This document shows, in pieces, positions 9,113 through 9,829 of a stretch of DNA of 64,000 bases (position 1 is its first letter; every line of letters starts with the position of its first letter). The position numbers were made by a program, and so were the translations under genes. The notes beneath the pieces are model-generated. The model had not been told where the DNA came from. It saw nothing but the letters and a program-made list of their open reading frames with translations, and did not search any database. The DNA is from Octopus sinensis (Eukaryota), in contig NC_043004.1 in assembly GCF_006345805.1 (NCBI RefSeq), positions 93,310,001 through 93,374,000 on the forward strand, given 5' to 3'.

Positions 9113-9562
9113 GTACATCAACATCAAAATAAAAATCAAATGGAAAGATGTATATAAAATATACAAATGGTCTTAGTAAGTTAAGAATTTATCTTATTAA
9201 GTATTTAGAATATCTCTTTGTTTCTGTTCAAATTCATGTCACTGAGCACACTTTACATATATAATTTATTCAAGAACAATCAAATTATGTAATCCCCATA
9301 ATTTGAAACCAGTTTGGTAAGTGCCAATGCAAGAAACTGAACCCTTCAGTCACTCTGTAACTTGTGCTGATTATATAATATGTATTTATGTATTATACAT
9401 ATTAAATTTCTCATGAATTTAATCTGTTTGTTTTTCTCTTTTCTTTCTTCCAGTTCTATCACATGATGTTATGAAAGACTTGTGACAGAGAATCTTGAAA
9501 GTGTTGAAAAGTCTGGAGACGTTGAATATATTTTGTCAACCCCCTGTCAGGAGCAGGTTCCA

Positions 9563-9829
9563 ATGAAGCTTGACTGGATTACAGAGGTTGTCAGCCGTGA
9601 CAAAGTCATCATCCTGCTTGTTAATTATGCCTTCTTGCTTGTCGTAGTTGCCAGTTTCATGATTTTTCTCCTCTACCTAACGCAGGACCTCTCCCCAAAT
9701 ATCAACTGGTCGGCATCACTGATGCTCTTAGCTGCAGCTTTTGTTATAGCCAACATGTTTCTGGCCAGCTACATTGTCCAAGTGCTACATGTGCGCAATG
9801 AACTGCCTATGATATACTTTCAATCTTGA
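9563..9829 (+). CDS. Putative small two-transmembrane protein (88 aa from the first in-frame ATG; open from 9467), family not recognised
   Basis: Non-repetitive ORF with two hydrophobic segments (VIILLVNYAFLLVVVASFMIFLLYL and WSASLMLLAAAFVIANMFLASYIV), in an exon-like block that follows a strong pyrimidine-rich acceptor (TTCCAG ending at 9453). Confidence 0.6.
   Translation: MKLDWITEVVSRDKVIILLVNYAFLLVVVASFMIFLLYLTQDLSPNINWSASLMLLAAAFVIANMFLASYIVQVLHVRNELPMIYFQS

Follow-up and report, generated by a model that had tools for sequence, protein, structure and literature searches.

We analyzed a 64,000-nucleotide (nt) stretch of the Octopus sinensis genome (contig NC_043004.1, positions 93,310,001 to 93,374,000 of the forward strand), hereafter the window, in which a small open reading frame (ORF) encoding a protein of 88 amino acids (aa), hereafter the microprotein, lies directly upstream of the gene C9orf72. 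Positions given without a contig name are those of the window.

The small ORF and its 5' leader

The coding sequence of the microprotein occupies 9563-9829 of the plus strand (88 codons followed by TGA, with the ATG at 9563-9565 and the stop at 9827-9829), and the ATG of C9orf72 (10179) stands on the same strand, 349 nt 3' of it. These values agree with the initial annotation of the window, which had described an ATG-initiated ORF of 88 aa with two hydrophobic helices about 350 nt upstream of C9orf72 on the same strand, and translation of 9563-9829 returns the peptide that it quoted. The proposed start of the microprotein exon is a candidate 3' splice site at 9424-9453 of the plus strand, made up of a polypyrimidine tract and a CAG at 9451-9453. 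The same annotation had read a strong acceptor up to 9453 and had noted that all frames close soon after it; we find the tract and the CAG there and a TGA in each of the three frames (9464-9466, 9472-9474, and 9483-9485), with every frame stopped by 32 nt. Its description of the sequence as non-repetitive also held, as a search within the window returned only the self-match and the microprotein stretch is thus single-copy.

The 5' leader of the microprotein spans 9454-9562 of the plus strand, and its first 44 nt (9454-9497) contain two overlapping upstream ORFs of 3-4 codons, one at 9463-9474 (ATG ATG TTA TGA) and one at 9471-9485 (ATG AAA GAC TTG TGA). In our search for exons farther upstream (1-9453), the ORF list held only repeats and low-complexity ORFs, and the 5' untranslated region of the mRNA of a second cephalopod, described below, found no match anywhere in the window. 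No G4C2 repeat is present near the microprotein ORF in the octopus leader.

The spacer and the C9orf72 gene

The spacer between the two ORFs (9830-10178, plus strand, 349 nt) contains 8 ATGs and is either one continuous exon or holds an intron of ~270 nt, for which the candidate sites are a donor GT at 9894-9895 (GTGAGA in the related Octopus contig L001) and an AG at 10163-10164. Purines dominate the tract that leads up to 10164 (aagaaagttaaaattttag). The initial annotation had the C9orf72 exon begin at 10165, a start for which relatives provide no support, the second cephalopod retaining its full 560-nt spacer unspliced in RNA.

The first coding part of C9orf72 (10179-10754, plus strand, 192 codons) ends at the donor GAGAAG/GTAAGC, and its translation is the same as residues 1-192 of P0052, which is an O. 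sinensis protein annotated as 'guanine nucleotide exchange C9orf72-like isoform X2'. Its tblastn identity to P0052 is 92.6%, with the alignment running on into the intron. The remaining coding exons lie within 17127-46657 of the plus strand and are approximate, being placed by protein alignment (tblastx with contig L006 of the second cephalopod; tblastn with O. sinensis and Argonauta proteins) at 17127-17240, 26342-26482, 30582-30701, 32935-33144, ~34490-34621, 38904-39038, and 46475-46654 plus the stop codon. Four exon alignments to P0052 reach 97.7-100%, and the lower tblastn figures reflect runs into introns. Against the C9orf72 family PF15019 the first exon, which represents the N-terminal part alone, for this reason scores 22 bits and misses the cut-off of 27; full-length downstream ORFs in relatives do carry PF15019. 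From these alignments, the downstream cistron is C9orf72.

The Argonauta protein and the mRNA of the second cephalopod both include the exon at 30582-30701, which O. sinensis isoform X2 lacks; this points to a skipped cassette exon of ~41 codons.

Selection on the microprotein

Block shuffles of the window lead one to expect 7.7 +/- 2.9 ATG-initiated ORFs of at least 88 aa, compared with 42 in the real sequence, many of them in repeats; when only 9454-10165 was shuffled, an ORF of this length arose in ~2% of trials (P ~0.02). Because about eight such ORFs are expected by chance in 64 kilobases (kb), length by itself says little. Comparison with a close relative says more. A word-indexed search of 5.8 billion proteins retrieved one 88-aa protein, P0001, which is 98% identical to the octopus microprotein and is encoded on L001, a 1,792-nt Logan contig colinear with 9149-10761, intronic flanks included. 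Since those flanks are present, L001 is genomic or pre-mRNA sequence of a related Octopus species.

Between the window and L001, the microprotein ORF differs by 18 substitutions and no insertions or deletions (indels). The third codon position accounts for 14 of the 18 and the second for none, and 16 are synonymous, the other two (L3V and I47V) being conservative. By the Nei-Gojobori method the synonymous rate (dS) is 0.33, the nonsynonymous rate (dN) is 0.010, and dN/dS is 0.03 (Fisher p ~1e-9), whereas the same differences read in the other two frames are almost all nonsynonymous, with dN/dS above 2 or no synonymous change at all. Against the homologue of the second cephalopod, dN is 0.18 and dN/dS 0.007, a value that shows low dN only, as dS is saturated. 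The initial annotation had stated that frameshifts or stops with a dN/dS near 1 in related cephalopods would speak against the ORF; the opposite was found.

Identity to L001 along the locus is 81% in the upstream intron, 95.5% in the leader block 9454-9497, 93.3% in the small ORF, 89.5% in the spacer, 94.3% in the C9orf72 exon, and 59% in the downstream intron. These comparisons show strong purifying selection acting on the protein that the microprotein ORF encodes. Cephalopod annotations in the protein collection that we searched do not include the microprotein; the octopus gene sets lack a real gene here.

The candidate acceptor at 9453 is kept in L001, where ttctttcag is followed directly by TTCTATCACATG. 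The leader block 9454-9497 is near-invariant between the two Octopus species, with both small upstream ORFs preserved, and may be a translational control element. As a separate observation, its identity exceeds what synonymous sites of the ORF allow. The spacer, which is more similar to L001 than either flanking intron, may likewise be a control element of downstream translation. The rest of the leader (9498-9562) is variable, with 71% identity, 17 gap columns, and indels of 13 and 4 nt. As neither length is a multiple of three, we rejected an in-frame upstream extension of the ORF (from 9467 or 9482) as coding sequence. We also rejected the idea that the ORF is the C-terminal exon of a larger protein: the frames close within 32 nt of the acceptor, the extension carries these same indels, and all homologues are 78-159 aa long and align from their own start codon.

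A family of two-helix proteins in molluscs and annelids

An exhaustive phmmer search of 1.84 billion representatives returned four further clusters of 85-120 aa proteins (five clusters in all), 27-38% identical and aligned from the N-terminus, and a profile search returned 15 clusters, every one at E <= 1e-22. Cluster look-ups and profile search together enlarged the family to more than 40 sequences, and its hidden Markov model (HMM) scores the octopus microprotein at E = 9e-33. Members of 80-105 aa occur in the second cephalopod, caenogastropods, heterobranchs, oysters, and siboglinid annelids, i.e., in two phyla, molluscs and annelids. The majority of the family is unnamed. Names exist for a few members, always as a 'hypothetical' or 'uncharacterized' protein, and these come from three gastropods (Nucella lapillus, Littorina saxatilis, and Plakobranchus ocellatus) and two siboglinids (Lamellibrachia satsuma and Ridgeia piscesae). 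The 88-aa homologue of the second cephalopod is 73% identical to the octopus microprotein, and the mollusc and annelid homologues are 26-36% identical to it; the C9orf72 of this animal is 65% identical to that of Argonauta.

Kyte-Doolittle analysis (19-residue means) gives two hydrophobic segments in the octopus microprotein, at residues ~15-39 (up to 2.7) and ~53-75 (up to 2.2), and AlphaFold2, run on an alignment of 29 family sequences, predicts a helical hairpin with helices at residues 2-43 and 49-87 (mean predicted local distance difference test score 71.6). The first predicted transmembrane helix (residues ~15-39, encoded at 9605-9679 of the plus strand) carries the invariant residues L18, N21, Y22, and F24, which form a 'VNYxF' motif. 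In the second (residues ~53-75, 9719-9787, plus strand), F60 and A68 are invariant and A57 and V72 nearly so; across two family alignments, R12, A57, V72, and E80 come close to invariance in at least one. The microprotein is therefore modeled as two transmembrane helices joined by a short loop, with both short termini predicted on one side of the membrane. Contacts between the helices are suggested by the invariant Asn-Tyr pair, which lies at the cytosolic end of helix 1, and by the face of small residues on helix 2.

The initial annotation did not recognize the protein family, and database searches bear this out. Pfam searches with the octopus microprotein and each of the 29 members gave no match at the gathering threshold, the best score being 14.9 bits against a cut-off of 28.4, and no single Pfam family was matched by more than 6 of the 29. 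Searches of PDB sequences with phmmer and with the family profile (hmmsearch) found nothing below E = 4.7, and a Foldseek search of the AlphaFold2 model against PDB returned 0 matches. The best-scoring Pfam families, DUF3180, Phage_holin_3_6 (Holin-X), and DUF2721, likewise have two adjacent hydrophobic helices and similar length; however, they score 13-15 bits against cut-offs of ~28, and their matches are not common to the microprotein family. The likeness is compositional only.

Linkage to C9orf72 in genomes

At every genomic locus examined, the microprotein gene and C9orf72 share a strand, and the microprotein gene is the immediate 5' neighbor. In Littorina it spans 10001-10887 of the locus sequence, with one intron after codon 8, and C9orf72 follows from 11496 on the same strand; in Lamellibrachia it spans 10001-10306 and C9orf72 starts from 10737. 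The two Nucella genes are on one contig with consecutive locus tags (ACOMHN_004122 and ACOMHN_004123), and their adjacency is read from those tags. The Plakobranchus microprotein and C9orf72 each come from a contig of 1,012,695 nt, probably the same one. A pattern scan of metagenome contigs added L028, an unplaced metagenomic animal contig whose C9orf72 is 33-40% identical to those of annelids, molluscs, and amphioxus alike. Here the microprotein stop is at 5258, and a C9orf72 exon begins within the next 17-110 nt.

The order and strand of the microprotein and C9orf72 are thus conserved in octopus, Littorina, Lamellibrachia, Nucella (by locus tags), L028, and the five transcript lineages described below. 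A search for mollusc homologues and for synteny with C9orf72 had been proposed in the initial annotation; the family extends to annelids as well as molluscs, and the synteny held at each locus where a family member was examined.

Two side observations concern these loci. In L028, the C9orf72 frame is already open at 5237-5290, in a different frame, before the microprotein stop, and its first ATG lies 17 nt past that stop, a geometry typical of termination-reinitiation coupling. A HEAT-repeat gene of ~313 aa, on the minus strand at 2632-7645 of L002 and 5272-9139 of L027, is oriented head-to-head with its neighbor, which in Littorina is the microprotein-C9orf72 unit and in amphioxus is C9orf72, and its exons are ~70% identical between snail and amphioxus. 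Its position beside C9orf72 is an ancient bilaterian linkage, and its N-terminus presumably resembles deoxyhypusine hydroxylase, judging by a motif. Neither the 9.4 kb that precede the unit in the window nor the upstream sequence of L005 or L028 contains this gene. In vertebrates, small membrane proteins are neighbors of the deoxyhypusine hydroxylase gene (DOHH), which may be a lead to a counterpart there.

Both ORFs on one RNA in relatives

Intron-free, RNA-derived contigs from five lineages carry a complete microprotein ORF and a complete C9orf72 ORF, 79-560 nt apart. In the second cephalopod (L006-L011, L018, and others, from at least eight libraries), ORFs of 88 and 494 aa are separated by 560 nt. 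The contig of Hua wujiangensis (L012, from the published RNA-seq run SRR32833658) holds ORFs of 85 and 494 aa with a spacer of 314 nt to the called GTG start, or ~365 nt to the first ATG, and that of a heterobranch (L013) holds ORFs of 93 and 538 aa with 408 nt between them. In an oyster (L014-L017, four libraries), whose C9orf72 is 87% identical to that of C. virginica, ORFs of 84 and 472 aa are only 79 nt apart, with no AUG in the spacer. A further lophotrochozoan (L003, L004) has ORFs of 85 and 459 aa and a spacer of 220 nt.

The C9orf72 ORFs are free of introns in these RNA contigs, whereas the gene bears introns in every genome seen. For the second cephalopod this can be followed exon by exon: its C9orf72 ORF is uninterrupted in L006, and by tblastx its parts match window exons spread over 36 kb (10326-10754, 17127-17240, 26342-26482, 30582-30701, 32935-33144, 38904-39038, and 46475-46624). 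Because the ORF maps onto separate window exons, contigs of the L006 type are spliced mRNA. All 17 C9orf72 contigs of the second cephalopod are colinear, and none represents an isoform that skips the small ORF.

Two apparent oyster 'isoforms', with spacers of 79 and ~117 nt, were discarded, being the same sequence with different gene calls. The spacer could not be aligned between the Littorina genome and the Hua transcript, the species being too diverged.

We take a bicistronic microprotein-C9orf72 mRNA to be established in the family, which supports the bicistronic or upstream-ORF arrangement that the initial annotation had listed among its options. We accept this mRNA because the 79-nt oyster spacer and the 17-110-nt spacer of L028 leave no room for a terminator and a promoter. 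In octopus itself such an mRNA is likely.

Start contexts and intervening AUGs

In octopus the start context of the microprotein is weak (gttccaATGaa, with C at -3) and that of C9orf72 is strong (attaccATGga at 10179, with A at -3 and G at +4), as had been noted initially. The microprotein AUG has C at -3 in octopus, the second cephalopod, Hua, and the species of L003, and the oyster has G there; in the heterobranch the start is ambiguous. The C9orf72 AUG was identified in five lineages, and a purine stands at -3 in each of them (gttaccATGgc in Hua). Given these contexts, some ribosomes should bypass the microprotein AUG. The number of AUGs between the two starts is 15 in octopus, 13 in the second cephalopod, 19 in Hua, and 20 in the heterobranch. 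The oyster has 2 in the 334 nt between its starts, which is compatible with leaky scanning.

Distribution outside lophotrochozoans

At the amphioxus C9orf72 locus, searched over the gene and 10 kb upstream, the family HMM found no homologue (best E-value 2.7), and inspection of the 860-nt interval upstream of C9orf72 revealed no suitable ORF. A single-sequence phmmer scan of all representatives likewise found no microprotein homologue outside lophotrochozoans. The family may be a spiralian innovation, or it may have been lost or have diverged past recognition elsewhere.

Weighing the alternatives

We consider it highly probable that 9563-9829 encodes a genuine 88-aa protein conserved among lophotrochozoans, and that this protein is the upstream cistron of a conserved two-cistron unit with C9orf72. 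Several points weigh against this reading. Contigs assembled from de Bruijn graphs can fuse overlapping neighboring transcripts, and the cephalopod spacers are long (349-560 nt) and AT-rich, that of the second cephalopod also having ATTAAA and AATAAA hexamers and a run of 13 A residues (A13). The octopus ORFs could each have an RNA of their own or be distributed over alternatively spliced RNAs. The 13-20 intervening AUGs of cephalopods and gastropods make simple leaky scanning to C9orf72 implausible, and reinitiation past an ORF of 85-88 codons is normally inefficient. The arrangement is not universal in animals, being undetected at the amphioxus locus. Finally, the translation and localization of the microprotein and its physical or functional link to C9orf72 are hypothetical.

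It is unlikely that the two ORFs belong to tightly packed separate genes, with the microprotein transcript polyadenylated in the spacer, C9orf72 driven by its own promoter, and the joint contigs representing overlapping or read-through RNAs. Such an arrangement would fit the AT-rich spacers of 314-560 nt in cephalopods and gastropods, the poly(A)-signal hexamers in L006, L012, and L013, and the annotation of two genes in Littorina, Nucella, and Lamellibrachia. It would also fit the fact that several C9orf72 contigs of the second cephalopod begin within the spacer, at L006 positions 512-724. However, the breaks at 512, 542, and 568 fall within L006 510-580, where a 30-nt tandem duplication, each copy of which ends in ATTAAA, is followed by the A13 run. 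Features of this kind are known to break de Bruijn graphs, and we attribute the shorter contigs to them, though L006 510-580 could itself be an internal poly(A) site or a priming site. Further, the short oyster and L028 spacers have no space for a terminator and a promoter, and the identical joined contig was recovered from at least eight libraries of one cephalopod and from four of the oyster. In octopus the spacer, scanned for AATAAA and ATTAAA, contains neither, and its conservation is above that of the flanking introns.

A second alternative, which we regard as improbable, is that one promoter and an upstream non-coding exon serve two mutually exclusive monocistronic isoforms, the exon being spliced either to 9454, in a microprotein mRNA with its end beyond 9829, or directly to the exon with the C9orf72 ATG. 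The good acceptor at 9453, kept between Octopus species, and the possible acceptor at 10164 are what such splicing would use. The many AUGs before the C9orf72 start argue for far better translation of an isoform that lacks the small ORF, and the several N-terminal versions of the small protein in gastropods suggest varied 5' exons. Yet the purine-rich tract makes 10164 a poor acceptor, and of the 17 C9orf72 contigs from the second cephalopod none diverges from the colinear bicistronic sequence. Moreover, isoforms of this kind could coexist with a bicistronic mRNA and would not replace it.

There is very little chance that the ORF is solely a cis-acting regulatory upstream ORF, i.e., that its translation matters and its peptide does not. 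Its location in the C9orf72 5' leader and its weak start context fit such a role, but conservation of the peptide reaches from cephalopods to annelids and includes invariant residues and the two hydrophobic helices, and an upstream ORF that acted independently of its peptide would not hold 88 codons under a constraint as strong as that measured against L001. A chance ORF in non-coding sequence, for which the numbers of such ORFs in the shuffles and in the window might speak, is refuted by substitutions biased toward synonymous change, by an ORF free of indels, by homologues that span two phyla, and by a position that is conserved.

Proposed mechanism

Under the two-cistron reading, one promoter and one mature mRNA would carry both ORFs, and both would be translated, the microprotein as the first cistron and C9orf72 as the second. 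Leaky scanning past the weak microprotein AUG could supply some of the initiation at C9orf72. In cephalopods and snails, reinitiation, internal entry, or an extra monocistronic transcript would have to contribute.

Together with SMCR8 and WDR41, C9orf72 functions at lysosomal and autophagic membranes. The microprotein would act in this membrane pathway, for instance embedded in the membrane as a partner or regulator of C9orf72-SMCR8. That the two proteins share a pathway is the most economical hypothesis, though we hold it to be less likely than not, and only the persistence of the linkage suggests it. A more specific proposal, which we regard as doubtful, is that the microprotein is a dedicated membrane subunit, anchor, or regulator of C9orf72-SMCR8 in spiralians, kept on one mRNA for more than 500 million years for co-production.

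Other features of the window

A 5-kb block within a C9orf72 intron (41000-46000) has a G+C content of 0.48-0.50, compared with ~0.38, and strong negative GC skew. Several broken ORFs of 160-320 aa lie on its minus strand, one of them with a DUF7047 domain (E = 1.5e-22), and the block is probably either a mobile element in decay or a nested gene. Upstream of the gene, a direct duplication of ~555 nt (5698-6015 with 6253-6555, and 6056-6223 with 6603-6887) contains two near-identical pairs of ORFs, each ending in a (CA)n tract, and looks like a duplicated repeat element. A compound (TG)n/(TA)n microsatellite of 690 nt at 8424-9114, 340 nt 5' of the putative acceptor, is the source of long artefactual ORFs in the ORF list.

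Comparison with known systems and significance

Animal bicistronic mRNAs with a conserved upstream microprotein are known, including those for MIEF1-MP (on the MIEF1 mRNA) and the SLC35A4 upstream-ORF microprotein. As in the octopus case, the 5' leader of the mRNA for a larger ORF encodes a protein of ~70-100 residues, and the small ORF is under purifying selection at the protein level; the SLC35A4 microprotein is likewise a transmembrane protein. The octopus family differs from these in having no sequence, Pfam, or fold match, in its host gene being C9orf72, and in a linkage that extends across molluscs and annelids, not vertebrates, and is known from sequence alone. Human C9orf72 has two non-coding exons, 1a and 1b, that flank the G4C2 repeat and precede exon 2, which bears the ATG. 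The human and octopus genes are alike in that the coding sequence starts in a downstream exon after a leader whose translation (repeat-associated in human) has consequences. In contrast to the human leader, that of octopus contains a microprotein and has no such repeat near the ORF, and we know of no two-helix microprotein in a vertebrate C9orf72 leader. In the full-text literature we found no description of a natural bicistronic gene of C9orf72 and a microprotein, or of this microprotein family. A conserved microprotein ORF in a leader is an arrangement already known in animals, with the family and its link to C9orf72 apparently undescribed.

C9orf72 is associated with amyotrophic lateral sclerosis as well as with frontotemporal dementia, and the microprotein is possibly its undescribed companion. 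Lying 5' of C9orf72 across molluscs and annelids, and on a shared mRNA where contigs are available, it is a strong candidate for a functional partner, as linkage so tight and so old is rarely neutral. An ancient bicistronic animal mRNA whose downstream cistron stands behind many AUGs also offers a natural test case for downstream translation. If the microprotein is indeed a dedicated subunit, it would be a new component of the C9orf72 pathway and would provide, in oysters and cephalopods, a handle on how the complex is coupled to membranes.

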